Of a stretch of DNA of 64,000 bases, positions 3,437 to 34,496 are shown piece after piece. The stretch lies in contig JBLDXI010000003.1 in assembly GCA_047495785.1 (NCBI GenBank), positions 558,001-622,000 of the forward strand, given 5' to 3'. Within the stretch, counting starts at the first letter, position 1; every line of letters begins with the position of its first letter. This DNA comes from Lepidodermella squamata (lineage: Eukaryota > Animalia > Gastrotricha). The notes below the pieces were generated by a model. That model searched no databases and was not told where the DNA came from. It worked only from the letters and a program-made list of their open reading frames with translations. Both the position numbers and the translations under genes were made by a program.

Positions 3437-6400
3437 CTAAGCGCCAACAATACGCTTGCCGATATAACCGGGGAGACTGTAGACGAATAGCGCGAAAATA
3501 AGCGCAATCAGCGTGATAATGACCAGCTTAATGAACAGCCACTTGAATTTGTTGCACAGAATGTAACGCAGCGATCTGAACGGATTTGTGAACCACAAGA
3601 AGCTAGTGTCAGGTCGATTTGGTTTCTCCATCGGGTCTGGTGGATCTCGGCCGAGACCGACAGGTCGTGTTGAAGCTTCCTCGGCGGTTAGAAGTTGGAA
3701 TTCAGCTTCGACTTTGCCTGTGAGCTCGATTTCTTGGGTCGTCTCGTTTTTGACGGTGAACGGCCAAAAGCCTCGCATACGGCGCTGTTTGAAGAGAGAT
3801 GTTAGCGGGGTCCTGCTGTCTGGAGCCACCATGTCTGGCGTGCAGTCTTTAGCGTCCTTAGCGCCACGAGGTAAGCTGTTGAGATCGAGCACCAGCGAGC
3901 CGAGAAAATCATCGGCTCCGACTAAATCAGCATCCCAAACCTAAAAATCAAAACTCAATTAGTATCCTTCGAAAATAATGGCTTCCCATACCAAATTCTA
4001 TATGACCCAATGATTCCCATAGATCCCCTCTTATTCCCCATTAATCCCCTCAGATCACCACAGATTCCAAGGGGATCCAAGAATCTTAATTTACTCGATG
4101 CAACAGCATCTTTCTAATGGTCTGGGGATCTTCCGAGGACGAACGGACAAATTCCTTGTATAAATCTATGAAAAGCTGTCAAACCTGAAGCGTGAGCCTA
4201 GCTGGCAGCTTCTCCTCGCTCTCGTCCCAAGACAGCATGTTCTCCTTCCGCTTGATAACAATTTTCTGCTCGCAAGACAAGTAGTCGAACTTGAAAACGA
4301 ATCGCCAATTGAAGTTTCCCTCGCCAGTCAACGAGCGGTAGTGCACATCCGTCTGCTGTGTATCCTCCGGCCCAGTCAAATACCCCTTGACGTAGATATC
4401 ACTCATCTTCTCACCGGTAATAGAAACATCATCCAAAATAACATCCTCAGTATTCCAGATGATACAACGCAACTCGTAGGACTTGGGCTTACGCGGGGAT
4501 ATGTCAATCGGGGGAGGGATGTTGCCCTTATCTGAAGGGAACATATCGACCCACATTTCAAGATGACCCATAACCTGTCCAGGCTGGTTTGGGTCGAACA
4601 GCAGCCGGTTTTCAATATGCTCAGGGACTAATTTGTACCCAGTCACTTTGTCCCAGTTATTAAGGACACCCAAAGCAAGATGCTCATTCGCATCCGGCAT
4701 GTTCTGCTCCCAGGTAACAGGTTGGTACAGTTTCTTGCCGATAATAACCTTCCCATCTTCGTAGATCGGAGCGTCGAGACCCTCCCGTCTACACATGTAG
4801 CTCAAAACGTGGGTCGGTCTGTTAGAATCTCGCCAGTTGTTAAAACCGCCCTTCTCATAGACAAGGGGCAATCCACACGTTGGTCTGTGTTTTGAGTAAA
4901 ATCGGCCTTCCAGGTCAATCTTAGTCTCGCCAATCAGCTCGTCGGTACCCACAAGATCCCAATCGTAGATTTGAACGGTCAGCATGTTGTCGAAGGGTAA
5001 CGAGGCTTTGATGTCAAAACAACGACCGAAAACAGGATTCAGCTGCTTCGAGACGTAGTTATCCTTATCTTTAATGACAGTTTTACCCAACCGGATGGTT
5101 ATGTAAGGATCAGACTTTCCGTTCATGTCTTTCGGATACAAATCGTAGGCCCGAACAACATAGACCCTTACCATAAGGGGTACGACAGTGGAAGGGGGTA
5201 GATTGTGGAAGAGAAGCGAACGACCGTGTTCGTCTCGATGCGGTTTCTGGCCAACCAGCGATGAATCCAAGCGGGATACTCGGATATTGCCCTTGAATTT
5301 GCCAGACATATGGCTCTTCTTCTGAGCCGGGTCGGCATCTTCATCCTCCTTACCGCGATTCAGCTCGAAAGTTCTGACAAAGTCTTCAAAATTCCCGAAA
5401 GCTGTTTCAAGGTCTGACGTAAACATTTTGAACACACGAACATTTTCCTCGCGTTGTAGCCGCTTGAGTTCAGATTTCGACAAATTCTCTGCTGGAATTT
5501 CGTCTGCAATGTACGCGGCGTTGTCAAAACCTGACTCTGATTTCGACTCGCTCTGTTTCTTCGTGCGGCTGAATAACTTGAGTTTCGACTTCCCGCCCAT
5601 TCCACCGGCCATAAGAGCCTTCCCAGCTAGCGTTGACGCTTCCAGTTCCACCCGTTTTTGCTCCTCGATAGTTGCGTAATACTTTGTCCACCAATCGGTT
5701 TCCTCGTCGTCATCGACTGGAGCTGCTTGCGCGGCGCCAGGTTCCCCGCCAGCCTCTGCAACAGGAGCAGGTTTCGACGATTGAGGTTCGGACTCTTTTG
5801 GCGGGAATCGAATTCGAATCTTCACTCGCTCGTACTTTTTGAGATTCCTCGGCTTCGCTTGAAGCTCCATACCTTCCGTCATCATTTCATCAGTCGCGCC
5901 GTAGCCAAAGTCGTCGTAGGCCGACGTCATCGCCATTGCCTCATCTGCAAGATGCGGATCGATCGGGCCGATTGCTGATTTCAAAACAGACGGAACCATG
6001 TAAGCGCCCTCCACTGGCGGAGCTGGGGTTTGGCCCAATTCAATCTGTAGTTGCGCCTTAGTTTGGTCGCCGAAATTTCCAGGAAGACTTCTGGCTAACG
6101 ACGAAATAGCTGGGGTACTGCCTGGTCCGAAATCTACGTCAATAACTGACTCTTCATCAGATGATGCTTTTCCGGAATCGTCCTCCATTGCCACGAAAAA
6201 CGCTGAAATATTAGGAACAGCGGCGGATCCAACTAGGAGTTGACGGCCAAAACTACGGCAATCCACGCAACGAATCATAAGAGGCGGGCAGAAGATGTCG
6301 TTATCAGGTAAATCCATCTCAATCGCTTTGATGAGACAGCCGAAGTTGGGGAAAGTCTGAGCGTTATTGATGACATCACTCTGAATAGTTTGACCAGATA

Positions 6401-9400
6401 ACTCAACATCTAAACGCGGTTTGTTGACCGAGAGGAGTTGAACCCTGGAGAGCTCGCGAAGACCCCAGAAAAGGATTTCGATCCTATACCTGCTCAAGGT
6501 CGGTCTGATACCTCTGGGGACTGGCATTGGTGAGTCTGAGGGTGCATCATCCGGGAGGTCGAGTTTAGGCAGGTCCTCCTGAGTTTTCCCGTCTTCAATT
6601 TGAAGCAGCTCGGTGGCGGCGAGGACCTCGCCAGATTCTGCGAAGGTCTTCGGCGAGATGAGTTTGAACCACTGTAACTGGGGTGGTACGTAGCGCTGAA
6701 GTTCGCGGCTGAAACGAACTATGGGAGTAATGTAAGCCACGCCGATCAGCTCATAAGATTCAGGGTCGTCGTAGTCGTAAATGTTAAGTGTAATGACTGG
6801 AGGGCGTTCCGTGATGGATTCAATGTTACCCCAGACTTCGACGTCATTTACGAGAAGAGTTTCGTCCCAAATCGGGCTAAGGGTTTCATTAATCACTCGA
6901 GATTTGTTAGCACAGTTTTGAATGTGGATAACAGCGAAAGGGTCGGATAAACCTGTATCATCAAGACCTCGAATTCCTCTGGCTTGGTAGAGATAGGACC
7001 TGAGTTGGAACTTCATCGACTCCTTGAAATGCAGGCTTGATGGGATGGGGGTAGATGGGGGTATTACGATGCCTTTCGGGAGTAACTGGAAGCATTTGTG
7101 CCAGTCTTTATGGAGGCCGTGCCAGGCTGATAGCGTGAGATTGCCGACGTGGGCGTTGGTGCGGTCAGGGGCAAGAAGTTTGAAGGTCTCCATCTTGCCG
7201 CACATGTTGCCGCACTCTTCAGGGACTTCGCTGAAATGTAAGCAGCGAAGGGGGATTTTAGCGTAGCCGATTTTTCTGTGATCACTGCCACCGACTAGCC
7301 AGATAAAGGCGTCGGGGAAGTCTTGTTCACGGGGAAGGAGAAGAGCATCAATTACTGTCATGGTTCGCGAGAGGGTAGTTACTGCTTCTTGACATGAGTG
7401 CACATTCAGACCGCTTTTTGTCCTTGAACAATTAGTGACGATTTCAGTCTGGAAATAGCAAGTTATCAGCAAAAATCATCATTATTTCTCTTATTAAATC
7501 CTCAGGTCCCTCAGACTTAATCTTCCACTTGCCCATGCTTCCCCATGCTTCCCCCTACTTTCCCCCACTTTCCCCAATCATCCTCGCGGAAAATCCCAGA
7601 ACTTCAAGAACTCTTTCTTAATAAAGTCTTCAGCCATTCAACCAACCCCTTAACTATTACATCCCGTCCCCATAGGCAATTATCGGGGCTAAAAATTTAT
7701 CTTACCAATGCATCCTTAGTTTGCTTCAGCCAATTTTCGAAGAGCTTCGACTGACGACCGACAACGCCAGTCGATTTTGAAAGGCGGTTGAACGTATTGC
7801 AACGGCCTACGACTTGCTTCAGGGTTTTGGCAACAACAGCCACAGCCAACTCAACTTTTTGCTGCTTCAAAGCTTGCCTAGCCCTGTAAACACCTTCGTC
7901 CTAAACAAAAGAGGATTGTAAGTTATAGGCTGATTTTCCAAGCTAAAAAACCTACAATTTCTGTGGCAATCTTCTCCAGCATATTGATTGTCGTAGCTTG
8001 CTTCCTTTGATCTTCATAGGCATAATGAACGGCCAGTAAAGGTTTCTTGCCCTGAAGGGGTAGGTACCCAAAGTCACCATCAGCTGGCTTGACAGCAAGA
8101 GCCGGGGTCAGGTGTAGAACTTTATCTATAAAAGATGTAAGGATGAACTTTAAAATCAAGTCTTATCAAGCCTTTCTCCCATATTCCGCATCAAAAAACC
8201 TTGGACCAATACCGGGTTTGACCTTCAACCGTAAAAACACTTACACTGTTCATAAATTTCTTCGAATGAAAACCCGACTAATATCGAGGCAATTATTTAT
8301 AGAAATGAGAGAAGTTCTAGACTCTTGAAATATAGTCGAACTTACCATGGTCCGCTCCGAGAAGAGGTTGAACCTCTTCTTTCACTGACTCTTTGCTTTT
8401 CGGCCGAGAGCCAATCGGGTTCTGAATTTCAGCTGGCAAAGTGATTTCAGGGTAAGGTCCAAGTGACAGTTGGACATGGATCGGTTTGTCCTTGATCTTT
8501 CCATCAATCATATCAACGCTGTGAATAGCTCCAAGAAGCAACAAGTCGCCTTTCACAGGAAGTAGAGACCGATCGCAAGGGGAACAGGTGTCGTTCAGAA
8601 CTTGGATTGCAGTAGGTTCAGGATTGTCGAGCAGCTCGGTGTGGAGCTCGATCAGGATCCTACCGCGATAGGCCTGAGCTTCGCCATATCGAGTGGCCAG
8701 CTCATCGTTAGGATCCAGAGCTCCGTACAGGTTGACCCAACAGGGTCCGAAAACAGGTAGATAGCCACCCGTGTGACTTTTGCCTTCGTTCGACACAGTG
8801 TACATGTCAATGTAGTGGCAGGCGATAAGATTGTCGCTGATGCCAGAATCGCGGACTTGGATAGCTAGACGTCGACATGGAGGAGGGAACATTTCTATGA
8901 AGGAAATCTGCTCGTTCCATTCGGGACTTGTCGTAGCTTTTTTGACAGTTGTTCTACCCTGCGAGAAATAAAAAATGAGCAATAAGATCACGCAACTACA
9001 AGAAATACAAGCCGTATAATCATACTTCCGACTTCAAACGTTCTCTGAAATTTGTACACCTACATATATTGAACCTTTGATGAGAGCCAATCTGAACCTT
9101 TTACCAGCTTTTACCGATTGATAGACAATAAAAAATGTGTTACCAGAGGTGGGGTTCGAACCCACGCGGGATTACTCCCATCAGATCTTAAGTCTGACCT
9201 CTTAAACCACTCGAGCACTCTGGTCGGGTGAATATTGAACCTATTACAACACTTCAGATCTCCTGTCAGATAGAACCCAGGTACTCTCAAAAGCTATTCC
9301 AGCCGATATTTAAAATAGGTGGAATCTTGCTAAACTCCTGGTTCAGGCCTCAATGAGCTTTAGAAAGGTTCAGAAAGGTTTCTCTGAATGTTTTTGGAAG

Positions 9401-12400
9401 AGCACATACCTGTTGATTGGCGAACAAGGCCATGACGAAAGGATCAAGAAGAGCAGAATCGCTTGACTTCAAAGCTCGTTTGAAGCCTGTCATTAGGCCG
9501 GAACTACTAGCAGAGGGCAGTTGCTCGGCAGCGAATATTCTCAAGCTGTACTTGGCAGTTTGCCAAAGCCCATCACTCGAACTTGCGCTCATCGTAAACA
9601 GATTCCTAAAAATATAAGATGTTTTCAAGTTTCAGAGCAAAAAAAGGTCAACGTACTTTTCAATGTTGTCATCTTCACCCTCAGCAGCGGCAGGTGCTCC
9701 TCCTCCCTAATAATGAAAAGAACAGTGTCAGAAATTCAGTTCAAACAAAAATTATGAGTATTGTGAGTGAAAAAAAGAAGAATTATCTTAGTTAACAAAG
9801 TTGAGTGGATCAGAACCGCATGCATACACGTTTTGTGAGGAATTTAATTTTCTGTTAATTCAAGACCAACATCAGCTGGTTGGCTTTTGTTATCTGAACT
9901 CCCCGTTGCAGCATTCCGCTCTTCCCTAGCGATTTTATGCTGATTTAGGCCGAAAAACGCCTTAATAAACTCTGCAGAGTCCTGTACATTGAAAGTATTT
10001 CGAAAATTTATGATTTTTGGATACCCAAAAATTTTAAAGAAAATTTGTAAGAAACTTACTCCGGCCATTTCGCCCTTTGCAACGACTGAAATGCAACATT
10101 TGAGGAAGCCCTTCGGAGGCGAGCAAAGATCGTTAGGGTCTGCTAATTGCACCCATTTTGTACCGATGGTGTGATCTAGGAATAATGCAAGATTTTTCTT
10201 GTAAATCGTTAAAATATAATATTTGATTTTTTACCTTGATGACGGTAGATTGTCGCCAGATCAACACGAAATTGGCCGATCATTTCATCGGAGAGCAGCT
10301 TTTTGCTATGCATAACCGATATGCAAACGACTTGATCGAGCAATTGTTGCAGACACATTCTCACATCGAAGAGCATAAACTAGAAAATTAGAAAAATAAT
10401 TTTAAAAATTCCAAAGAATGGGAAAATCAATTTAAATGTTTTCAAATTTTTAAACTTTAAAAAAAAAATCAAAAATTATTAACAGAAATTTGGGACATTT
10501 TCTTCGCATCTCAAACCTCATTGAAGTAAGGGCAATTAGTCGAGGTTTTAGTCGCCGTGGTTTTCTTCTCATTTCCAACTTGAACCGTGACCACCGGGTC
10601 AATATTCTGACCACTCAATTGGCGCGCCTCGACAACTGTGATGTGAACCTGGAAACTGCGCGTCTGCAGCGCTTCGTAATTTCGGCATTTATACAGCCGA
10701 TCGATTCTAAGATATCGGGCGAAATTAGGAAAATTCAGAAAAATATTTGATTAGTGCGCTCGCCTTTTGCGGGGTGACAGAAAATCGGCCGATGGCATGC
10801 TGTCAAGTTCCTCGGCAAATTTTTCCGAGCCATCGTCAAGCAGAGATGAAAGAGCCGATTTTGAGACAACTAAAAAATTAGAAAACAATTAATTTAGCAA
10901 AGCAAAAGGTAAAAAATATTTTAAATATTTAATTAGTTATTATCAGACACTAATTAACCTATTTAACTAAATCATCCCATTTAATTAGTTAATATTTAAT
11001 TATTAATTAATTAGTATGTTTTTAATCAAAATTTGTTGACAAGACAATTGAACAAGACAATTCACGAGACTATACATCGATTGATTTTTTTCAAACCGTT
11101 GCGAAAATAGAAAAAATCGTTGTCGTCGTAGCACTCGGGCGTGGCCATTAGGGCTTTCACGGCGCGACTCGGCGACGGCGTGAACCGCCGCCGCGCTAGC
11201 TCCGGGTTGCTCGTGCTCGCGCACAGCAAGTTGCGGCGCTCGTGAAAGCCCGCGTTAACCACTATCAGCGGTTCAAGCTCTACACCTGTACGGGATTTCG
11301 ATTTTTTGGGAGAAAAGATATCAAGTGATCATCAATTTAGAAACATGTCGGAATCATTATCATGGCGGCTGATTTGAGGAATTAAAAGAGGTCCGTACCT
11401 GAAACGGAGTCAGCATCCTTTGTGCCGCGCTTTTGAGGGGTTGAGGATTTTCCTTTGAAGCCCAGCTTTCCGAACAATCCTTTCCTGAAATAAAAATAAG
11501 AAATAACAAGAATAAATAGCTGAACAAGACGAAAAATCAATCAAGGTTCCAAAGGCAATCAGAGATGGAGACTCGATATTCTCAAGTATGGATATTAAGG
11601 TTCGATAGAATATCAAATGAAAAGCTGGTCAAGAGACAATTTTTTCAATTCCTCCGATTTAGGAATGAGCCTCGAATTTAGTTGTCAAAGATCACCAGGG
11701 GCATAATAAATGTTGCAGCATAGCGCTGAATCCCCGCCCAGTGTTCCAGATCTAATTTGAGTAATAGATCGGAGTTTAGGATTCTCTGTATCCAGCCGAC
11801 CAGAGTGCTCGAGTGGTTTAAGAGGTCAGACTTAAGATCTGATGGGAGTAATCCCGCGTGGGTTCGAACCCCACCTCTGGTAAATCTATTTTGATCGTTT
11901 AAAAGCAGTTTCCAGAAAATTCGTCCCCAGGAATATATTTTTTCGAAGTATTTGATGGTATTTAAAATTAACAATTTCCAGGCAACCTAGGCAAGAATTC
12001 GATATCTTTGAACAAATACGGTTGACCGAAGATTCCAAGATCCTTTATGGTGCGTCCACAAACTAACTTCGGAGAGGGTGACTTCGGAGACCGAACTTGA
12101 AACTTCGGAACACTCACGCGAAACTTCGGTGACGTTATCAGTGGCAATTTCCGCGCGCGCACGGCATGAGTCGTCCGAAGTTTCTATTGTTTGCGGGCCG
12201 AAGATTTCGAGTGCGCGCACGAGTGCGAGCGCGCTCAAACTAGAGAAGGGGCCGCAGGGTAGACACAAATTTTTTTCACTTTCACTTGAATTCTCAAAAT
12301 TCATAATTAATAATATGCGAAATGCGACGACGATAACAAGAAGCTAAATTTCGACGCAAAATTCACCATTTTTTTCAGAATAAATACAAAATTAAATTGA

Positions 12401-15400
12401 TTTTTTTCAACGCGCACTATAAGCTATTTTCAAGGGCACCCGATGATTTCTATATTGAATTTTTTGTGAAAACAAGGATTTTACTGCGCGCGTTTATATC
12501 CTTGAAATTTACGTCATTCTCGTCAATTATAGTCAATAATACGAATTAAAGATGCCACAGGAAAAGTTAATTTATGTCGTCGCCCTACCTCGCGTGGTCA
12601 AGTGGCCGCGCGCGCGTGCGTATGTAATAACTTCGGACACGCACAAACTTCGGTTCGGAGGCGCTTCGGAGAGCATTTGCGGGGCTCTCCAAACCGAAGT
12701 TTGTGCGCGTCCTTTGTTCAGTGCGTGCGCGCCGCCCATTGTTCTCACTTCGGGCGCGCAGTCCGAAGTGCGCGCGTTTGTGAACGAAAATCTCAAACTT
12801 CGGTCAGCGATTACGAAACTTCGGAGGCTAAAACTTCGGACGCGTCTCCGAAGCAGTTTGTGAACGTAACATTACTTTCCTAAAAGCCAAATATGTTCAA
12901 TGATTCGCTTCGAAAAATTATCCGGAATCTTGAAATCAGCTTCAAAAAGGTTCCAGATAATTTTTCAAAGCAAGTGAATCATTCAAAATGGTTCATAGCT
13001 GAATTATTCTACAATTTATTTCCTAGCAATAAGGCAGAGACTGGTCGATATCGGTCGAAGAAAGATTGAAGATATAATTTAGGCTAGGATAATAATCGAA
13101 AATTCCCTATCAGGACATAAGGCTACGAATAAACTTAGTGCATCAACGTTGAAGGTTCCGAACTTAATTTAAGCTATGAAACGAAGCTTAGCAGCCTCTG
13201 CTTCCGCCTAACCAGAGTGCTCGAGTGGTTTAAGAGGTCAGACTTAAGATCTGATGGGAGTAATCCCGCGTGGGTTCGAACCCCACCTCTGGTAAATATA
13301 TTTTATCTCTTTTGGAAACCATCTTCCTGGAAATACCTATTCAGAAATATTTTTTCGAAGGGGTATTTGGAATAAGAATTTCCAGGCAACAAATACGTAA
13401 CAATCTGAGTATAAATAAATTAAAATTCATAGGTTGATAAAAGATCCCAAGATCCTTACTTTCATAACAACTAGACTTCATAGACTGGAATCATAGCTTG
13501 GAATAAGCTTCAGAAAGGTTCCAGATTTTGATCGAAGCTGGTAAATCATTACTAAAATAGTCTATACCAGTGCATTTTTCATTTCAAGCTAAATGCTTTC
13601 TCATTCCTGATCGGCCACGAAACATGAAGGATCTAATGTAGACTAGTATTAAAACTCCCAATCAAAGGTCAAATAAACGTTGAAGGTTCCAGACTTAATT
13701 TGAGCTATCAATTGAAGCTTAGCAACATAACCATAGTGCTCGAGTGGTTTAAGAGGTCAGACTTAAGATCTGATGGGAGTAATCCCGCGTGGGTTCGAAC
13801 CCCACCTCTGGTAAAATCGTTTTTCTACCTCAGGAAAAGAAGTTAGCCTGTTAAAATATCAGCTTAGATATTAAAAATGAAATAATAATTGCGGAACAAG
13901 TTTTTTAATTGAAATTTGAATCAAATTTAAAAAAATATTGTCTTACTTTTTCTTCTCGCCCCCAGCCGCTGACGTAGCACTGGTGACAATCGAGGTCGAG
14001 TCGTAATGCTCATCGCCATCGCCATCAGGCTGCGACGCAATCTGCTGCAACAGCGCCCTCTGCCGCGCCTCCTCGCCCTCGTCGCCGCCCGGGGTCGCGT
14101 AAGACACCTCCATATCGATGCGGTGCTGGGTTGGCTGGTTCGTCTCCGCGTTGACAAACGTCTCATTCACCTCAATGTGCTTCAGTTCCATGACTTGTTC
14201 GAGTGAAATGGGCAGAGCTGACAGGTACTTGTCCCCGCTCCGCTTCACCATGTACAGCTTTATCGCCAGCATATCGCCCTCGTGAAGAGTCGAACCAAGA
14301 GGCCATGAGAAAACCTGATTAGAGAAAATTATTGTCATTTTTTTAAATAATTAATTGCTAAAATTGGGAATTTTTCGATTTTTCACAATTTTCCGAGATT
14401 TTGAAATGATTTCCAAGGAATGAAAAATGCTCCGAAAATTCGGAAGTTTCATTCAAATTTCAGAAAAAATATTCCACGAATTTTTCGCGAAAATTTGATG
14501 ATTAAAATAAGGAAAATCGAATTTTGAAATAAAAAAGCTTACCTGATTGATTTTAATGCTGTCACCATCGGCTTTGACCTTGTTCGACTTATACAAGGAA
14601 CTTTTAAAATCAAGCGACAAATAGTAGTACTGCTTCGGCTCGGGCAGTCCCGCAACCCGGCCGACCTTCACCATCAGCGCCATGACTGAATTGATGCGCT
14701 GCTTTTTCGCTGTAAAAATTAGAATTAATTCACATGGAAATCGACGTAAAATTAGCGAAAATTACCTGGTTTATTACTTTGACCTAGGTTATGCGCACGC
14801 TTTTTGTAGTGGCGGTCGGTTTTATTACTCGAATAATCGGTCGAAAGTGGGTCAGATGATGACGATGGCTTTAGGTTGTCTGTATTGGGCAATGACGCTA
14901 ATAAATTCGCTTTGTCGTCGACGTAGGAAGAATCGTCTACAATTAATTCAAGACGACTTGTTTCTGCTGGGGCCGCGGTAGCAGCAGCAGGTGACGCCGG
15001 CAATACGGTGCTCGCACTTCGGCCATCCTTGAAAAAAACACGCACAAAAATTAATCGAGCGCATAAAAAACTACTCTCGCGTATTAAAATGAGGAAAAAA
15101 GAGACAATTTGACAAGTGAAAAATGGGTTTTTGGCAATCCGAAACACGTATTTCAGGCTATATATCGATCGAATCGTCTCGATCATTTGAATCGTTCAAT
15201 GGGTGTCTCTCGAATCGGTCAAAATTACGTGAAAATTCGAGTTGGGCGTTTTACTATTGGGTACTATTATTTTTTATATGTTTTTTTCCTATTGCGTAGT
15301 GGGATATAGCGAAATGCCTTTTGGCTAATTTCCCATTTATCGCACCTGACTCAGGTATAATACCTATACTACGGCGTTATCTGAATTAATCAGCCCTTTT

Positions 15401-15961: not shown

Positions 15962-17096
15962 CGTATATTACGAAAAAAACCAGACTTATTTTCTCTGTTC
16001 ATTTTTTTCCAGAGGGGGAAATTTTCGGCGTTTTATGACAGCGATTTGCATAATTTTGAGCAGTAAAAACGGAAGTTATTGCAGACTCACCTGTAGTCAA
16101 TTCGTATTAGAATAAGTTGATGGCTAATGAGTAAGTTGAAATTAGGAAATATTTAATTAATATTCTGCTGAAAAATAGTAAAAATTTAATAAAAAATCGC
16201 TTTCGATCGACTCTTCTGGAACTGTAAAAAAATGAACAATTGAAGAAAAATAAAAAATATGAAAATATGATATTTAAAAAATGTATTGAAAAAATAGAAA
16301 ATTAGATAATAATGTTTAAAAAATTGCTAGTGAATTGAGATTTCGTATTTTGGGTGATTCTCTAAATTTTGGCGCGAATGAGTAACTCTGTGATTTGTTT
16401 CTGCACCGGACTCAGGGGCGGTAATTTATGAGTCTCTGAGCAGCATGTCTGCCTGTCACAGCGATGCTGAAACATACTGGCGGAAAAAACGGGGAAAGAA
16501 GTGAGCGAAAAAAATTAATATATTATAATATACACATCATAGCGCGTATCGCGCGGCAAAACCGAGCAGCTGCCATGGTCGAGTGAATAGGATGGTGGGA
16601 GAGCGGCGCCGGGCAGCTGATCAAACGAACACCTTTTATCATTTAGCGATGTGTTAACAAGTACTTCAATATTAAATTAATTATTATTATTATTCAAACC
16701 GGATGAGAAAAATTTAGCGAAATTTTACAACACCACAAAATTTATTTTTCGTCATAGGCATTATTTGTTCATTCTTTCGCAAAAGTTCATTGAGTGGGCG
16801 AGTTCAAATTCGCGTAGGTTGCGCATTGAACCGGTACAAGAGGTTTGAAGCTATACCTGTGGAATTCATTTTTGAACCTTCGGCACTTGAGGCTTTGCAG
16901 GTTACTAAATTTTCCCAATTGAACTTGAAAAAAACAGTTTGGAGCAGAAATTGTTATCGAAAAAATTCCGATTTTAGAAATTAAAATCAATTCATTTTAT
17001 TTAATTAAAAAATAATAAAAAATTCTGGACATTCCCAACAACGTTGCAAAATATTGGTTTCAAGTTCCAGCTTGAATATCGCGTTGGAGCCATTAT

Positions 17097-17981
17097 TTAT
17101 CGCGGGCCACAACTGCCGCTATTGATGTTTCGCCTGTTGACAACAAAATATATAAAAAATCGTGAATAATTCTAAGAGGAAAAATTCAAATACAACTTAC
17201 ACGACGCAGTTGTATTTAACGTTGCAATCGGCGTTGCTCGCCTTCGGGCAGCCGTTTGTCACGCATGGGAAGCAGTTGGGCGAGCGGCTGGGCGCGGAGC
17301 AAAACTGAACGGCTTCGGATTCGGCCGCTTGACACGCACGAGCGCCGCAGTTCACAACATTACGGGTGCTAAACGAAAATACAAATCACTCAATTATATT
17401 CCGAAAAAACTGATGAAGTTCAAAAATGGCCTAAACTTTTAAATAAAAAAATTAAATTAAAATATTTTACAAGATCACGATAACTGAAAATGATGAAGTT
17501 TCCTAGTAATTTGATGCGAAAAATGGCTGAATCTATATCCAACTTCAAATATCGAGCTGAATTTTCATGAACCTTTCAAAGGTCGATTCGAAGGTTAGAA
17601 ACTCACTTGACGTGAAGCAGCATAGCCCTGCAACCTTCCGGTGTTTCGCGAAACGATCTAATTAAAAAGGTCGAATTGAAAGAAATTGAACTTGAAATAT
17701 GGGGTAGATTATTTACAGCGCTTCAGGCGGGATATCGGTCCACAAACACCTGTGGCAGTTGAGGTTATCTTCTTTGCTCAAAGTAGCCGGGCATCGACGG
17801 CTGCACAAAAAATACGCGAATTTCGTAGTGTAAGAAAAAAATCGAAAATTAATTGAACTTCGGAAACTTACAAGGAAGCTGCGATGAGGCCTGGGCAGGG
17901 TTCCACGAAGCCATTCCACTGGCCAGCTGTCAAGCCAAATGCGGCCATGGCAAACGTCAATGTCGCTAGGAGAGAGGCCAT
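17097..17981 (-). CDS. Small secreted cysteine-rich protein (149 aa, 14 Cys), 5 exons; not in ORF track
   Basis: Exons 17981-17872, 17800-17717, 17657-17607, 17368-17201 and 17133-17097 are joined by four GT-AG phase-2 introns into one open frame (450 nt). Signal peptide MASLLATLTFAMAAFGLTAG; AATAAA on the - strand at about 17001-16996. Confidence 0.85.
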
Positions 17982-19406
17982 ATTTTCGAAAAATGTGAGT
18001 AAAATTGTTGACTTATTTTGAGAGGGAATCTTTCTGTAAGGTTGCTCACCTTTGGCTTAAATACCGTTTTAACGTCCATAATTTTGAGGCTGTGGCGGGT
18101 AATAAAACCCCGCTTGGCCTCGAAGGCGTGGACTTGGACATTTTTATAACGCGTAAAAACACCAATAACGAGCGTCGCGGCGATGACTCTAGGCAAATTT
18201 TTTACCGAGCGGTGTTTACATGAACAAAAAATCTCACCTGTGGGCACATCTCACTTGTAGAGTTTTTGTGATGACTAAAATAAGATAACAATTCAACATC
18301 ACGCCTAAAATAGTTGACCAATTTAATGTTTTATATTTCCATCATACAATCAGTTGAAACCACGATTTTGTCGCGAACTTCAGAATTTCGCGGCTCAACA
18401 GGAGCCTCTCCACATCCGTCTACTATAGTCAGAAAATGTTAGGGTTATATATATCACGCTACAGCCCACAGTGCATTCTCGCAATTTGTTTTCAATAAAA
18501 TGTAAAAATAATTGAAATCCTTACTCAAATAAATGCGTGTTATTGAATATTGGTACTGGGAAATGGGTCCAGTTGAGTAAGACTCTTGCTTCCCCTGATG
18601 CGGGCGGAAAAAATCAATTTGACCTTACCATTATATTTGGTGTTCAAAAATGCACTTATTTGCTAGATTTCATCGTTAGATCATGAGCTTCCTGGCCTTT
18701 CTGCTTTCTGAAAGGTTCCACTCGCGCTGTGCAGTTGCGCAGAGTTGTCCTCGGGTCCAAAATTTCGGATCCGATCTGATCCCGGCGAAGGAAAGTTGGG
18801 AGACTTTTCAATCACTTATTCAGCCTAACCACGCGGATATCCGTTTTCCTTCAATTTTCTCACCAAAACTTGTCATTAAATGGATATTTATGATGGCAAG
18901 TTTCGAGCTATTCGGATCCGGCCAGATCCGGCCCGGGGAAAACTTTGATTTCACAATTAATTTTGCCAGAGTAAAATATAATCAAACCACATTTCATTTC
19001 GAAAACAGTGGATTTAAAATGTTCGCCCGTGACGATTCAATTCTTCTGTTACTTCAAATTAGATGTTCTACAAAAACATGTATACCAGGCAGAAAAGAAA
19101 TTTTCTTTGCCAAGTCCAAGTTTGAGGGCCCAGCCCTGCTTGATAGATTGCACGCGAAATGGGTCGAAAATGGAAAAATTTTGTTCGTCCAGCTCGGTGT
19201 ATGGCGTGCTTTGGAAACACTAAACAATTCGACGTGTTCGACTTGTACGTCATGCCTTCCACGTTAATATATCACGTGTTAAAGCTACCACACGACAGTC
19301 TCTACATAAAACCTCTCTACGGCACTGTAATTTCTCAAAACACGAAATTCTCAAAGCGGAGACTTTTGCTTTTACCGTTCATTCGACTTACATTTCTTTT
19401 ATCGCA

Positions 19407-20267
19407 ATGTCCAAGTTTGCTGCCTTTTTTCTCATCGCATCGGTCATATGCGCTGTAGGCGTGAGATGTCAAGGTCCTCAATCAGCAGGCGATGGAGTGG
19501 ACAAACAATCACCAACAAGACGAGGTAGAATTGCAGAGTCCACTACGACAGAGTCCATCCTTATCGTGAGACGTCGCCAGTGCCTCACAAAGATGTGCCC
19601 GCGCGTTCGCTGCATGGCTAATGCTAAATGTGATCTGCAGATGAATCCTGAAACCAACGAAATGCAATGCGGATGCTGGCGCAACAGAGCTAATAACGGA
19701 TCCAGCGACGGATCTGGCGAACAATCAACAACAACAACTACGGAATCAATCCTTTCCGTGAGACGTCGCCAGTGCCTCACAGATTTCTGCCCGCGCGCTG
19801 ACTGCATGGCTAATACTAGATGTGATCTGCAGGTGAATCCTGAAACCAACGAAATGCAATGTGGATGCTGGCGCAACAGAGTTGATAACGGAACAGGATT
19901 TGGCGAACCATCAACAACAACTACAGAATCCGTCCTTGTCGCGAAACGTCGCCAGTGCCTCACGGAGACATGCATGCATGTTCGCTGCACGGCTACTACT
20001 AGTTGTGATCTGCAGATGAATCCTGAAACCAACGAAATGACATGTGGATGCTGGGGCAACAGAAGTGATAACGCATTTGACGACCAATCAACAACAAGAC
20101 GGGGTAGAATTGCAGAATCCACTACTACAGAATCCATCCTATTCGCGAAACGTCGCCAGTGCCTCTCGGAGACATGCCCGGTTGTTCTCTGTAGAGCTAA
20201 TACTAGATGCGATCTCAAGGTGAATCCCGCAACCAATCAAATGCAATGCGGATGCTGGAGCTACTAA
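19407..20267 (+). CDS. Secreted polyprotein precursor of four 6-Cys peptides
   Basis: Signal peptide MSKFAAFFLIASVICAVGVRC, then four repeats of (R/K)RR|QCL..C....C.....CDL..NP.TN.M.CGCW separated by Thr-rich spacers. AATAAA at about 20366. Confidence 0.88.
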   Translation: MSKFAAFFLIASVICAVGVRCQGPQSAGDGVDKQSPTRRGRIAESTTTESILIVRRRQCLTKMCPRVRCMANAKCDLQMNPETNEMQCGCWRNRANNGSSDGSGEQSTTTTTESILSVRRRQCLTDFCPRADCMANTRCDLQVNPETNEMQCGCWRNRVDNGTGFGEPSTTTTESVLVAKRRQCLTETCMHVRCTATTSCDLQMNPETNEMTCGCWGNRSDNAFDDQSTTRRGRIAESTTTESILFAKRRQCLSETCPVVLCRANTRCDLKVNPATNQMQCGCWSY

Positions 20268-21005: not shown

Positions 21006-23300
21006 ATGGCTTTGATTAAACCTGTATTTCTTCTGTTGTTTTTTCCCGCCGTTCATGGTGAATTAACGCAATCAAAGAATAGAACCAAAACCATCCGCTT
21101 GCTTTCACTAATACCCGTATTTGGTATGGATCCAAAGCAAGTTCAAGGATACACAGCAGCTATAAGCTACGTTTTGGACAAAGTTCACTCAAGTGCAAAC
21201 ATACTAAGCGATTATCACATCGAGGTGGAACAACAGGAGGAATTTTTCGGAAACTACGCTGTAAAGAGGGCAATCGAACATCGCAGAAAGGCAGAGAACC
21301 AAGTGCCTATCATTTTCGGAGCTGCCTTTGGCGAGGGATGTAAATCGCTCGGGGCGATCCTTCACCACATTGACAGCATAGCCATCAGCCCAATGTGTGG
21401 AGCGCCTTATCTGGTTAACCGAGAGCTCATTCCGAATTTATTCCTATCGATTGCGACCACCAAAACATCTGTCATGGCTGTATTAGCATTTATGCGCCAA
21501 ATCGGTAAGTGGGACACTTTAGCCATTGTAACGAATTCAACCGTACTTTTCGATTATTCCACAGCTTTCATGCTCCACGATCAGGCAGTTGCGAACGGCT
21601 TTAAAGTTCAAAGTTTCGATGCGATCAACCAAGTGACTTCAGAAGCGGTCGCTGTTTTGAAAGCCTCCCAGCAAAGGGTAATCTATCTATCGATAAGTCA
21701 TCCTACAATGGCACCGCAGTTCCTTTGCGAGCTTTATCGTGCTGGAATTACGGGTGCGAGGTACGTCATCTTCGCTCCATTCACGGCTTTCTCGACTACC
21801 GTGGTTCCTGGATGCTCGAGTGAAATCTTGATAGAACAGTACCGCAAAGTCCTTTTCCAAGGTATCGTTACAAAACCTTTAAACAGCTCAGCAAGAACTG
21901 ATCTAGGCGACAATGCTGCGGAATTTAACGAATTTTTGGAGAGCCGAAATATATCTCTCCGTGACGATCCATTCCTAGCATACATATTTCGCGATGCTCT
22001 CTCAACAACTTTGATCACTTTAAATCAAACGGATAGCATACTGAAAGAGGAATTCAATCTCACATTGTTAGATTACGATCGCTACCCGAAACTTGTGGCT
22101 ACAGTTACACGGAGAGCTTTGCTGTCAACTGAATTCAATGGTGTTAGAGTTGGAAGACAATCATATAGCAATGAGGGCCAATTAATTGGAGATGCTGTTA
22201 ATCTCGCCCAATTGAGTTCGAAGGGTGGTATGACGGCTCGTCTGCTCATCCGCCAATCGCGAACCAATTCTAAGGGTGAATCTGACCTTCTAAGTTTAGT
22301 CCTTGAAGCAGTCACTCCCATTTTTTGGTTAGGCGGTTCTCCTCCAAGGGTTCAGCCTTTTGTTCATTCGGAAATGTCGACAATCAACAAGCCCGTTTTC
22401 GCAGTAATTTGGTTCATAATAATCGTTGCGACTCTTTTACAAGGCTCAGCTGTAGTCGCAATTTTAGTTGACAAACCATTCAGGTTTCAGTTTAGAATTT
22501 TAAAGTTGACCGGATTGGTAGGGTGTCTATTCCTCAATTCAGCTGCTGCCTGTTTGTCGATCGATCGAACTGCAGATGCAGCAGGCTTATCCGATACCTC
22601 GATTTTCCTTGCTGTAGTTGGAGCAGTAGTTCCGATGTCGCTTTCAGCTTTTCGCATGCTTGCTTTGCACTCGCTGTCCAAGCAAATTGCTTTCCCCTTA
22701 GTTAAAAGAGCAGAGCGAATGTTAGCGCTATATTCGCTTCAGTTTGTCGAAAAGCCTAGCATGAAGTTGTTCTCAATATCGAGCGCAGGAGTTGCGACTT
22801 TGATGATTAGCTGGATTGCCACGAGAAAAACGAGGTGCTTAAAGTTTCAAGCATTCGCACCGATTTACGATGAGCCTTCTGATACGATTACTGGAAAGTT
22901 CGTCGTAAAATGCTTGAATTATGGCGCCAGTTCGACAATAGGATTCGCCATTCTTGGTGTTATTGGTGCATACCTGGAAGCTTTGCTGATTTTCGCATCG
23001 TTTCTATGCTATCAACTGGAGCATGTCATAAAAAGTCAGAAGATTGAAGTTCCGGAATTTGCATCGAGTGCTTTAGCAGTAATTTTCGGCGCGACCATGC
23101 TACCTGCTATCATTTTGATTCAGATCAGTTTGGCAAAGGACAATCTCACGCAACAAACCATATTGTCACTCAACTGCGCAGTCGTTTCAGCTGTATATTC
23201 AATTCTGTACATAGCGCCAATTTTCCGTGAGCTGATGGCAGCAAAACATCGCAGCAAAGTATACGTCGGAGGTTCGATCAAAATGCGCAACGTTTCGTAG
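21006..23300 (+). CDS. Class C GPCR, GABA-B-type architecture (VFT + 7TM), intronless, copy 1
   Basis: Signal peptide, ANF/Venus-flytrap motifs (ILSDYHIEV, PIIFGA..C, PNLF, WDTLAIV, FLCELYRAGITGARYV, IFWLGGSPP), no Cys-rich domain, seven hydrophobic segments. Confidence 0.88.
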   Translation: MALIKPVFLLLFFPAVHGELTQSKNRTKTIRLLSLIPVFGMDPKQVQGYTAAISYVLDKVHSSANILSDYHIEVEQQEEFFGNYAVKRAIEHRRKAENQVPIIFGAAFGEGCKSLGAILHHIDSIAISPMCGAPYLVNRELIPNLFLSIATTKTSVMAVLAFMRQIGKWDTLAIVTNSTVLFDYSTAFMLHDQAVANGFKVQSFDAINQVTSEAVAVLKASQQRVIYLSISHPTMAPQFLCELYRAGITGARYVIFAPFTAFSTTVVPGCSSEILIEQYRKVLFQGIVTKPLNSSARTDLGDNAAEFNEFLESRNISLRDDPFLAYIFRDALSTTLITLNQTDSILKEEFNLTLLDYDRYPKLVATVTRRALLSTEFNGVRVGRQSYSNEGQLIGDAVNLAQLSSKGGMTARLLIRQSRTNSKGESDLLSLVLEAVTPIFWLGGSPPRVQPFVHSEMSTINKPVFAVIWFIIIVATLLQGSAVVAILVDKPFRFQFRILKLTGLVGCLFLNSAAACLSIDRTADAAGLSDTSIFLAVVGAVVPMSLSAFRMLALHSLSKQIAFPLVKRAERMLALYSLQFVEKPSMKLFSISSAGVATLMISWIATRKTRCLKFQAFAPIYDEPSDTITGKFVVKCLNYGASSTIGFAILGVIGAYLEALLIFASFLCYQLEHVIKSQKIEVPEFASSALAVIFGATMLPAIILIQISLAKDNLTQQTILSLNCAVVSAVYSILYIAPIFRELMAAKHRSKVYVGGSIKMRNVS

Positions 23301-30208: not shown

Positions 30209-32225
30209 TGCTTTTCGTGAGCTAAGGGCAGCTAAACATCCAAGCAAGTGATAAAAGTTGTATATTTCGATAGCTTAGCCCATTCTGGTAAAGAAAATAT
30301 TTGTTCTGGAATTTTCAGATCACATTTTAACAATTTTTTCCGCCCCGACATAATCGACAAATTTCGATCTTCGTGATATAGTGACCTACTTTGCGAATAT
30401 CTAGATGACCTTGTAAAGGTCCCAGGATGACGAGCCTGGTCTCGTTCGAAAGAGCGCCAAACGTTGTACTAGGATAAAAATTATCAACAAATTACAAAAA
30501 TGACGTTTTTCAAAAAGCAATTTAAAAATGGGTCGATTTTGCATGCATTTAGCTAGGCGCACATGGCTCAAATAAAACGCACAAAAATGTGGCTTTGCAC
30601 ATGGTGACCTTTGCACCCTAAAATTTTGACACTATGGCAGGATCGTAAGCTTCCGATCTTTATTATTATCTATGGAGATAACCGTTTCCTTTGAAAACTA
30701 GCCTAAGGAGTCACGCGCCTTGAGCAACATCTGCGACTAGCCTTACAAGTCTAAAAATAGGTGCGTATTATTTCGCGGACACATTGTAGTTTAAACCCGA
30801 GCTATTCAACACGCCTAACTATGAAAATGTCTAGCAGAAAGATATATTTTTGGTTAATAAATTTAAATTGAAAATCGAAATTATAGTATTCGTCTGAAAG
30901 GAGGACAGCGCTAACTAGTGTATCATTTTCGGCAGGTAAGCGACTACATTGCGGTTCCAAATTGTCGGATGAGGTGTTTTAACCCAAATATTGAACACTG
31001 AACACGAATGCATAAAAAATCTGGGTTTCGGGATTGATTCTGAATGTTAACTACAGCTAACTACAGCGTGCCTCATAAGTTGCGCAAACATTTTTTAATT
31101 TTGCAGATTTGTGAAGAAGTTAAACCGAACCTGATTTTTGAGTAAATTTTTATGATACAGCTTCAAAATTTATATGGTTGAATAGAGCGGGAGCTACTGC
31201 CCTTTATGGCCACGGCTCGTCCACAGCCGATGAAAACTGTCGTTGCAACGCCAGGATATAGTGAGGGCTGAAATTCGTAAATTTACTTAGAAATGTGCTC
31301 AGGGAGGAATTTTAAATTGTAAATTCGAATAATTTCGGCAGTATTGCAAAGACAAGAGTCTCTTATTATTTGTCGATGCTTCAGGGATACAGAGGATGAA
31401 TTTTCACATGAAGTTGAAATTATAAAATTAAGGCGGATATTTTAAATTATTCCATCCTCTGTTTCTTGTCTACGTGGTCGAATTCGGTCGAAAAATTGAA
31501 AAAAAAATTAAAAATTGACCTGAGATTTTGTCGGAGCCATATGCGTTTTCCTGAAAAAGATAAAGGAAGAAGTGGTACTGGTACAATTAGCTTTCATAAG
31601 CCGGCATTTCGCGTGCTATTTTGTTTGCATTTATTAATTTAATTTAATAAAATTCATTTATTCAAACTTGAAAATTGATTTTTAATAGTTGTGAATTCCT
31701 TGACTTAAAATGTGCCTTAGGTGTTAGGTGATAGCCTTAGATGATAGGTGTACCATCGTGTTCCGCGAGGTTTCCGAATAATGTTCTCACTTAGCCGACG
31801 TTTTAACGTTTTGCCGTCCCAAAATTGATAAAAATAAAATTTATATCGAACCATTGTGACTAAACGTGACGCACGTGACTAATCAGGGAACGTTTCAGAC
31901 TGCTCGAGCAGCCTGAAAGGTAGCAGGATAAAGTGTTTCATATTATGACAGCTTGAAAGATCACATGATACTTTGGCGTGCGCTATGCGTCTCGGGATGT
32001 TCACCTACTGACGGAGTATGGTATCATAATGTTTGGCTGAACGCATCAGTCGTTACATTCTTCATACTTATTATCGTAATTATTTATTACTGTTATGCAG
32101 TCAGATCGTCGCCCGTCTTTGATGAATTCTGTCATTCATTAGAACATCGCCGTCTGATATATCCCCTTACTCAATCGCATATTAAGACAAGCAGTGTGGT
32201 AAAAGCTTCAAGTCACTCGGATGCT

Positions 32226-34496
32226 ATGGCTTGTATTAAACCTAAGATATTTTTCGCGTTAGTTCTTCTCGTCGTTCATAGCGAGTTGGCGCTATCAAAG
32301 AATAGAACCAAGACAATCCGCTTGCTTTCCCTTGTACCTGTATTTGGCATGGATCCGAGGCAAGTTCAAGGATTCACAGCAGCTATCAGCTACGTTTTGG
32401 ACAAAGTTCACTCAAGTGCCAACATACTAAGCGATTATCACATCGAGGTGGAACAGCAGGAAGAATTTCTCGGAAACTATGCTGTGAAGAGGGTGATTGA
32501 ACATCGTCGAATGGCAAGTAGCCAAATGCCTATCATTTTCGGAGCTGCCTTTGGCGAGGGATGTAAATCGCTCGGGGCGATCCTCCACCACATTGACAGC
32601 ATAGCCATCAGCCCAATGTGTGTAGCGCCTTATTTAGTTAACCGACAGCTAATTCCGAATTTATTCCTATCGGTTGCGACCACTAAGACGTCGGTCATGG
32701 CTGTTTTAGCATTTATGCGCCAAATCGGGAAGTGGGACACTTTAGCCATTGTAACGAGTTCAACCGTACTTTTCGATTATTCCACAGCTTTCCTACTAAA
32801 CGATCAGGCAATTGCGAACGGCTTCAAAGTTCAAAGCTTTGATGCGATCAACGAGGTGACGCCCGATGCAATCGCTGTTTTGAAAGCTTCGAGGCAAAGG
32901 GTGATCTATTTATCGATAAGTCATCCTACAATGGGACCGCAGTTCCTTTGCGAGCTTTATCGAGCTGGGATCACAGGGTCGAAGTATGTCATCTTCGCTC
33001 CAATCACACCTTTCTCAACTACGGCAGTTCCCGGATGCTCGAGGGAAATCTTGACCGAGCAGTACCGCCAGGTCCTTTTCCAAGGCATTGTTACAAAACC
33101 TTTAAACAGCTCAGCAAGAACTGATCTAGGCGACAATGCTGCGGAATTCAACGAATTTTTGGAGAGCCGAAATATTTCTTTGCGTGATGATCCCTTCCTG
33201 GCATACATATTTCGAGACGCTCTCTCAACAACTTTGATCACTTTAAATCAAACGGATAGCATACTGAAAGAGGAATTCAATCTCACATTGTTAGATTACG
33301 ATCGCTACCCGAAACTTGTGGCTACAGTTACACGGAGAGCTTTGCTGTCAACTGAATTCAATGGTGTTAGAGTTGGAAGACAATCATATAGCAATGAGGG
33401 CCAACTAATTGGAGATGCTGTTAATCTCGCCCAAATGAGTTCGAAGGGTGGTATGACGGCTCGTCTGATCATCCGCCAATCGCGAACCAATTCTAAGGGG
33501 GGATCTGACCTTCAAAGTTTAGTCCTTGAAGCAGTCACTCCCATTTTTTGGTTAGGCGGATCTCCTCCGAGGGTTCAGCCTTTTGTTCATTCGGAAATGT
33601 CGACAATCAACAAGCCATTTTTCGCAGTAATTTGGCTCATAATAATCGTTGCGACCCTTATGCAATGCTGGGTCGTACTCGCAATTACAGCAAACAAACT
33701 GAGGTTTCAGTTTAGAATTTTGAAGTTGACCGGATTGCTAGGGTGTCTATTACTCAATTCGGCTGCTGCCTGTTATTCGATCGATCGAACTGAAGATGCA
33801 CCTAGCCTATACGATATCTCAGTTTTCCTCGCGTTACTCGGAGGTTACGTCCCCATGTCTCTCTCGGCATTTCGCATACTTGCTTTGCACGTGCTTTTAA
33901 TGAAGCAAATTGTTCACCCAGTTGTTCAAAGAACAGATAAAATTCGCCCACTGAAATCTCTGCAGCTAATCGAGAAGCATTGCCTGAAGCTTTTCTCGTT
34001 ATCGAGTGTAGGAGTTGCGGCTTTGATGATTAGCTGGATTACAACGCGAAACACGAAGTGCCCAAAGCTTCAAATGTTCGCACCGATTTACGATGAACCT
34101 TCCGATACGATTACTGAAAAGTTCGTCATAAAATGTTTGAATTATGGCTCCAGTTCGGCGATAGGATCTGCCCTTCTCGGAGCTATTGGCTTTTACGTTG
34201 AAGTTTTACTGATGTTTGCATCTTTTCGATGCTACCAAATAGGGCATGTCATAAAAAGTCAGAAGATTGAAGTTCCGGAATTCGCATCGAGTGCTGTGGC
34301 TGTAATTTTTAGCGCGACCATGCTACCTGCTGTCATATTAATTCAAATCATTTTGGCCAAAGAAGGTTCGACGCAGCAAGCTATAATGTCACTCGAATGC
34401 TTAATTGTGTCCGCCGCATTTTCCAGTCTGTACATAGCGCCAATTATCCGTGAGCTGAAGAGAGTAGCTAAATGTACCAGGGTGGCCAATGTATAA
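32226..34496 (+). CDS. Class C GPCR, GABA-B-type architecture, intronless, copy 2
   Basis: Collinear paralogue of 21006-23300. The true start is ATG at 32226 (MACIKPKIFF), by alignment with MALIKPVFLL. Confidence 0.88.
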   Translation: MACIKPKIFFALVLLVVHSELALSKNRTKTIRLLSLVPVFGMDPRQVQGFTAAISYVLDKVHSSANILSDYHIEVEQQEEFLGNYAVKRVIEHRRMASSQMPIIFGAAFGEGCKSLGAILHHIDSIAISPMCVAPYLVNRQLIPNLFLSVATTKTSVMAVLAFMRQIGKWDTLAIVTSSTVLFDYSTAFLLNDQAIANGFKVQSFDAINEVTPDAIAVLKASRQRVIYLSISHPTMGPQFLCELYRAGITGSKYVIFAPITPFSTTAVPGCSREILTEQYRQVLFQGIVTKPLNSSARTDLGDNAAEFNEFLESRNISLRDDPFLAYIFRDALSTTLITLNQTDSILKEEFNLTLLDYDRYPKLVATVTRRALLSTEFNGVRVGRQSYSNEGQLIGDAVNLAQMSSKGGMTARLIIRQSRTNSKGGSDLQSLVLEAVTPIFWLGGSPPRVQPFVHSEMSTINKPFFAVIWLIIIVATLMQCWVVLAITANKLRFQFRILKLTGLLGCLLLNSAAACYSIDRTEDAPSLYDISVFLALLGGYVPMSLSAFRILALHVLLMKQIVHPVVQRTDKIRPLKSLQLIEKHCLKLFSLSSVGVAALMISWITTRNTKCPKLQMFAPIYDEPSDTITEKFVIKCLNYGSSSAIGSALLGAIGFYVEVLLMFASFRCYQIGHVIKSQKIEVPEFASSAVAVIFSATMLPAVILIQIILAKEGSTQQAIMSLECLIVSAAFSSLYIAPIIRELKRVAKCTRVANV

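Follow-up and report, generated by a model that had tools for sequence, protein, structure and literature searches.

A family of predicted 14-cysteine precursors, probably secreted, in the gastrotrich Lepidodermella squamata

Does the minus-strand locus at positions 17097–17981 of a 64,000-nucleotide stretch of Lepidodermella squamata DNA (the window, G000:C3:558001-622000 within a 121.2-Mb, 151-contig assembly) hold a genuine spliced gene, and what kind of Cys-rich protein would such a gene encode? An earlier note on this DNA had described an orphan gene of five exons for a secreted protein with 14 Cys. We propose that the locus belongs to a lineage-restricted family of precursors of approximately 150 residues, each composed of a signal peptide and a mature 14-Cys protein of approximately 14 kDa, which is probably secreted and disulfide-locked and may bind a conserved partner. 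We regard this explanation as likely as a whole. Small, secreted, disulfide-rich, lineage-restricted families are common in invertebrates, and the kind is familiar; the secreted proteome of this phylum is essentially unexplored, with almost no molecular characterisation.

The gene and its relatives in the genome

The gene model was rebuilt from the window DNA. Five minus-strand exons join into 450 nt (149 codons and a TAA stop), and comparison by eye showed that the 149-residue product is the same as the protein of the earlier note. The rebuilt model confirmed the five-exon structure, the four GT-AG introns in phase 2, and the even Cys count given there, and the intron plan is kept in the paralogs. 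The exons have a GC content of 0.53–0.60 versus 0.24–0.31 in the introns (Table 1). The internal exons of 84, 51, and 168 nt are symmetrical, with phase 2 on both sides, and each could be skipped in frame. Paralogs B and E have an in-frame stop immediately ahead of the ATG, so this Met does not lie within a longer protein. The intact frame, the splice sites, the GC contrast, and six paralogs with the same exons, phases, and splice sites place the model far beyond chance. We conclude that the predicted gene is an intact, spliced protein-coding gene under selection. A BRAKER annotation of L. squamata has been reported on figshare (PMC11660948), and the gene may already be predicted there.

The idea of an orphan singleton did not survive a search of the same genome, which was made with exon 4 and then with profiles of exons 4 and 2, the models being traced by exon-wise tblastn and splice sites. 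At least nine related loci are present besides the window gene, giving a family of at least 10 loci. Full models were obtained for seven members (the window gene and paralogs A, B, C, D, E, and G). Paralogs A to E match the window gene in their five exons and in the phase of their GT-AG introns. G follows the family exon plan with one extra phase-2 intron inside exon 4, and this intron is also found in H; the two form a divergent subfamily (L012:4488-5268, minus strand, and L017:1350-1790, plus strand). The introns of older pairs are no longer alignable, while exons, phases, and splice sites have been kept. In the phylogenetic tree, B groups with D and E, G is a distant outlier, and the branching of the window gene, A, and C is not resolved. 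As part of the explanation that we consider likely, the family would be lineage-restricted, would have grown by tandem and dispersed duplication, and would have been kept under purifying selection.

Two copies are damaged. Paralog F (L011:3950-4573, G000:C30:~1.086 Mb) is nearly identical to E, from which it lies 33 kb apart, and is 5'-truncated: homology breaks inside exon 1, the leader-coding part is missing, and an in-frame TAG stands directly upstream. In the decayed fragment L027, other residues stand in place of the Leu-Trp that follows the first CxxC, so that the conserved Trp is lost; Ser has taken the place of one Cys, and exon 4 is incomplete. This fragment exemplifies an unconstrained copy, in contrast to the intact members.

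Some minor features of the family were also seen. All of its introns are in phase 2, which is unusual, and G has a run of 11 Gln immediately after the leader. In locus H, the pieces that resemble exons 2 and 3 (L026 and L017; G000:C20:2727145 and 2731750) are 4.5 kb apart, and H is either a single gene with an intron very long for this genome or two partial copies.

Table 1 Features of the window gene (window positions) and loci of its family (contig positions)
Feature	Position	Strand	Description	Basis
Putative promoter element	18056..18063	-	TATA-like TATTTAAG, ~75 nt upstream of ATG	read from the letters
Exon 1, coding part	17872..17981	-	110 nt; ATG 17981-17979, hydrophobic leader of ~20 residues (17981-17922), then Gln-first mature N-terminus and first conserved Cys	paralogs keep leader and Gln after small -3/-1 site
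Intron 1	17801..17871	-	71 nt, GT-AG, phase 2	GC 0.31
Exon 2	17717..17800	-	84 nt; most conserved block of the family, 3 Cys including first CxxC, then Leu-Trp	alignment, paralog comparison
Intron 2	17658..17716	-	59 nt, GT-AG, phase 2	GC 0.27
Exon 3	17607..17657	-	51 nt, 1 conserved Cys	paralog alignment
Intron 3	17369..17606	-	238 nt, GT-AG, phase 2	GC 0.29
Exon 4	17201..17368	-	168 nt, 8 conserved Cys including second CxxC	alignment, genome search
Intron 4	17134..17200	-	67 nt, GT-AG, phase 2	GC 0.24
Exon 5, coding part	17097..17133	-	37 nt; last conserved Cys, TAA stop 17099-17097	paralog alignment
Putative polyadenylation signal	16996..17001	-	AATAAA, ~96 nt downstream of stop	read from the letters
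Paralogs A, B, C	C3:330-334 kb		three tandem copies	genome search
Paralog D	C3:343 kb			genome search
Paralogs E, F	contig C30			genome search
Loci G, H, I	contigs C32, C20, C29, respectively		more distant members	genome search
L027	L027:1393-1799 = G000:C3:~339.0-339.4 kb		decayed fragment between paralogs C and D	genome search

Conserved cysteines, constraint, and the leader

None of the 14 mature Cys varies across the alignment of the seven full models, and additional Cys occur only in the leader. The spacing of the mature Cys is nearly fixed (10, 11, 2, 17–19, 13–14, 4, 10, 7–9, 2, 4, 7, 5, and 7–9 residues). The other invariant residues include Pro, Trp, Glu, and Asn, and only residues structural in kind are invariant. 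The even and invariant Cys count, together with the fixed spacing, suggests intramolecular bonds in a globular fold, and the mature protein most likely contains seven intramolecular disulfides.

The proportion of nonsynonymous differences (pN) is well below that of synonymous differences (pS) in all 21 pairs of models, as counted by the Nei-Gojobori method. The ratio of nonsynonymous to synonymous substitution rates (dN/dS) is 0.05 between D and E, 0.16–0.20 between B and either D or E, and 0.12–0.22 between the window gene and B, D, E, or A. Overall it ranges from 0.05 to 0.24, and from 0.12 to 0.24 beyond the D–E pair where dS is unsaturated, silent sites being saturated in the oldest pairs. 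By these measures, we consider the family members to be old coding genes maintained by selection.

Every one of the seven models begins with a hydrophobic stretch (mean Kyte-Doolittle hydropathy 2.0–3.3 over 10 residues), followed by small residues at -3 and -1 directly before a Gln, and none of the seven precursors has a later hydrophobic segment. All seven thus satisfy simple heuristic rules for a cleavable signal peptide, namely a hydrophobic core, a -3/-1 site, and no further membrane segment. The predicted mature proteins have 129–140 residues, a mass of 14.0–15.5 kDa, an isoelectric point (pI) of 5.3–8.3, at most one N-glycosylation sequon, and a net charge (K+R minus D+E) of -3 to +3. 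Since the leader and the cleavage site before Gln recur in all seven models, export and a possible pyroglutamate are plausible. The earlier claims of a secreted protein and of an N-terminal Gln in the mature form are upheld in this way, the former as probable and the latter as likely. The family proteins are probably secreted, and a pyroglutamate cap at the mature N-terminus is plausible.

The internal duplication (6 + 8 Cys) proposed for this protein fared less well. The resemblance in spacing between C-x10-C-x11-CxxC (C1–C4) and C-x10-C-x7..9-CxxC (C7–C10) is real, and both segments are conserved in the family, but a true duplication lacks statistical support. When the halves were compared by hhalign using family sub-alignments, C1–C4 aligned in register with C7–C10 with P=0.053 and a probability of 1%. 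The intron positions do not correspond between the two half-units. A duplication is therefore unproven.

Searches for relatives and a fold

All homology searches were conducted with single exons (the longest being 55 aa) or with a 98-aa open frame that occurs naturally in paralog D and links exons 3 and 4 through an open intron. Pfam gave no match at E<=10, whether searched with exons 1, 2, and 4, with exon 4 of eight paralogs, or with the 98-aa frame. Searches of PDB sequences with the exon-4 profile and the 98-aa frame returned chance-level rows only. HMMER with the exon-4 profile gave no match at E<=0.001 among 1.84 billion representative proteins, and a word search with the 98-aa frame yielded no candidate among proteins of 54–171 aa. 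JGI metagenomes gave no confirmed match to the exon-4 and exon-2 profiles, and the ESM Atlas contained no usable neighbour of exon 4. In these exon-wise searches, the scaffold of 14 fixed Cys, two CxxC, and all-phase-2 introns matched nothing, in agreement with the earlier statement that no family was recognisable. An AlphaFold2 model of exon 4 alone (eight rows) reached a predicted local distance difference test (pLDDT) score of 48.8, with one low-confidence helix over the C-x10-C segment.

These results bear on the first rival explanation, in which the protein is a divergent member of an already described Cys-rich family, such as a helical extracellular domain with 10–14 Cys, and was missed by searching exon by exon. 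The queries were short, at most 55 aa or, counting an intron-coded insert, 98 aa, and locus H, a relative within the same genome, reaches no more than 32 bits with the exon-4 profile; relatives as distant as H would thus be invisible in the library of 1.84 billion proteins. Against this stand the empty Pfam search, the absence of anything meaningful among PDB sequences, and the lack of an ESM Atlas neighbour. On balance, we consider membership in a described family unlikely.

Comparison with known systems gave partial likenesses. Secreted phospholipase A2 of groups I and II shares a signal peptide, a mature size of approximately 14 kDa, and 14 Cys, which form seven disulfides in those enzymes, but its Cys spacing is unrelated to that of the family. 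These enzymes are marked by a catalytic CCxxHDxC motif with its His-Asp dyad and by a calcium-binding loop; none of the seven mature sequences contains CC, HD, or CxC, and we reject the phospholipase idea on these motifs. The Pfam model of secreted phospholipase A2 had no match at E<=10 to the exons or the 98-aa frame. The two C-x10-C segments recall the disulfide-stapled helices of twin Cx9C (CHCH) proteins, and the one in exon 4 is that predicted to be helical with low confidence. Those proteins, however, are leaderless, reside in the mitochondrial intermembrane space, and have four Cys, unlike the present products with their x10 spacing, 14 Cys, and N-terminal leader. Flatworm micro-exon genes likewise encode secreted products from symmetrical internal exons; their exons are 6–36 nt long and hold most of the coding sequence, and their peptides are variable and of low complexity, whereas the family has internal exons of 51–168 nt and a fixed Cys scaffold.

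Water-borne pheromones of molluscs and ciliates (attractin, temptin, and Euplotes Er) are small, secreted, disulfide-locked, partly helical, and lineage-restricted, like the 14-Cys family. No sequence similarity to the family was detected for any of them, and the 14-Cys protein greatly exceeds attractin and the Er pheromones in both size and number of Cys.

Proposed function, rival readings, and surroundings

For the lineage-restricted 14-Cys family that we favour, we propose the following course. The signal peptide would be cleaved to leave a Gln-first mature protein, which may cyclise to pyroglutamate. The mature protein would be compact, partly helical, disulfide-locked, and extracellular, and would act by binding a conserved partner that is endogenous to the animal, possibly a receptor, a small ligand, or part of a matrix. 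We suggest with low confidence that the protein serves in extracellular binding or signalling through this partner, because selection is purifying rather than diversifying, the net charge is close to zero, and none of the conserved motifs looks catalytic. In our view, the family protein is not an enzyme, nor is it a weapon that evolves fast. A more far-reaching version, held only tentatively and rather doubted by us, is that the protein represents an undescribed 14-Cys extracellular domain that only gastrotrichs or closely related animals possess, with two CxxC half-units and a pyroglutamate cap, and that it acts as a signalling ligand or carrier of a new class. If expressed, the protein would be a compact and probably very stable new fold, and studies of gastrotrich glands or signalling could use the family as a marker. 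In practice, the analysis yields a verified gene model and a family catalogue.

Several points weigh against the proposed explanation. The evidence for the gene comes from genomic DNA, and the function put forward is a proposal. The signal peptides were called by simple heuristic rules, and the disulfides were deduced only from the even and invariant Cys count. Searching by single exons may have missed a distant known family, and the exon-4 model is too poor to show a fold.

A further rival explanation is an immune or antimicrobial effector, or a toxin, acting on microbes or prey. The product is small, secreted, and Cys-rich, the family is multigene with tandem copies, and the neighbouring gene at 19407-20267 also codes for secreted Cys-rich peptides. 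However, the near-zero net charge and the pI of 5.3–8.3 differ from those of cationic antimicrobial or defensin-like peptides, and selection is purifying instead of diversifying (dN/dS 0.05–0.24); these features make both a classical cationic antimicrobial peptide and a fast-evolving arms-race toxin less likely. We also know of no venom apparatus in this microscopic grazer of bacteria and algae, which counts against a toxin. Taken together, an effector or toxin appears improbable.

We judge it similarly improbable that the protein is a structural part of a secreted material, such as cuticle scales, egg shell, or adhesive-gland secretion, cross-linked by disulfides. Several paralogs would fit a need for dosage, but the sequences are without low-complexity or repeat regions, and the Cys pattern points to bonds within a globular molecule. 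Lastly, we consider a non-functional frame, arising by chance or in decay, very improbable, although two family copies are damaged and the evidence so far consists of genomic letters. The frame is uninterrupted, its splice sites are canonical, exons and introns differ in GC, the Cys do not vary, and pN is well below pS in comparison with each of the paralogs.

The setting of the 14-Cys gene is animal DNA. The window has a GC content of 0.36–0.50, and its long open exons match ferlin C2 and FerB domains, two ligand-binding domains of ionotropic-receptor type, a pentameric channel, Sin3, and a polycystin channel. The large ferlin-type gene (4179-14683, minus strand; C2, FerB, and ferlin dsrm-like domains) shares its strand with the 14-Cys gene, and its apparent first exons are found approximately 2.4 kb downstream of that gene. 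On the plus strand, two long exons with an ANF-receptor-type ligand-binding domain (21006-23300 and 31953-34496) are approximately 11 kb apart and probably belong to paralogous ionotropic glutamate-type receptors. The neighbouring frame at 19407-20267 (plus strand), 1.4 kb from the 14-Cys gene, is a single open frame of 286 aa with a leader and four 6-Cys repeats. Each 6-Cys unit is preceded by basic residues and Gln, and the sequence is unrelated to the 14-Cys family.
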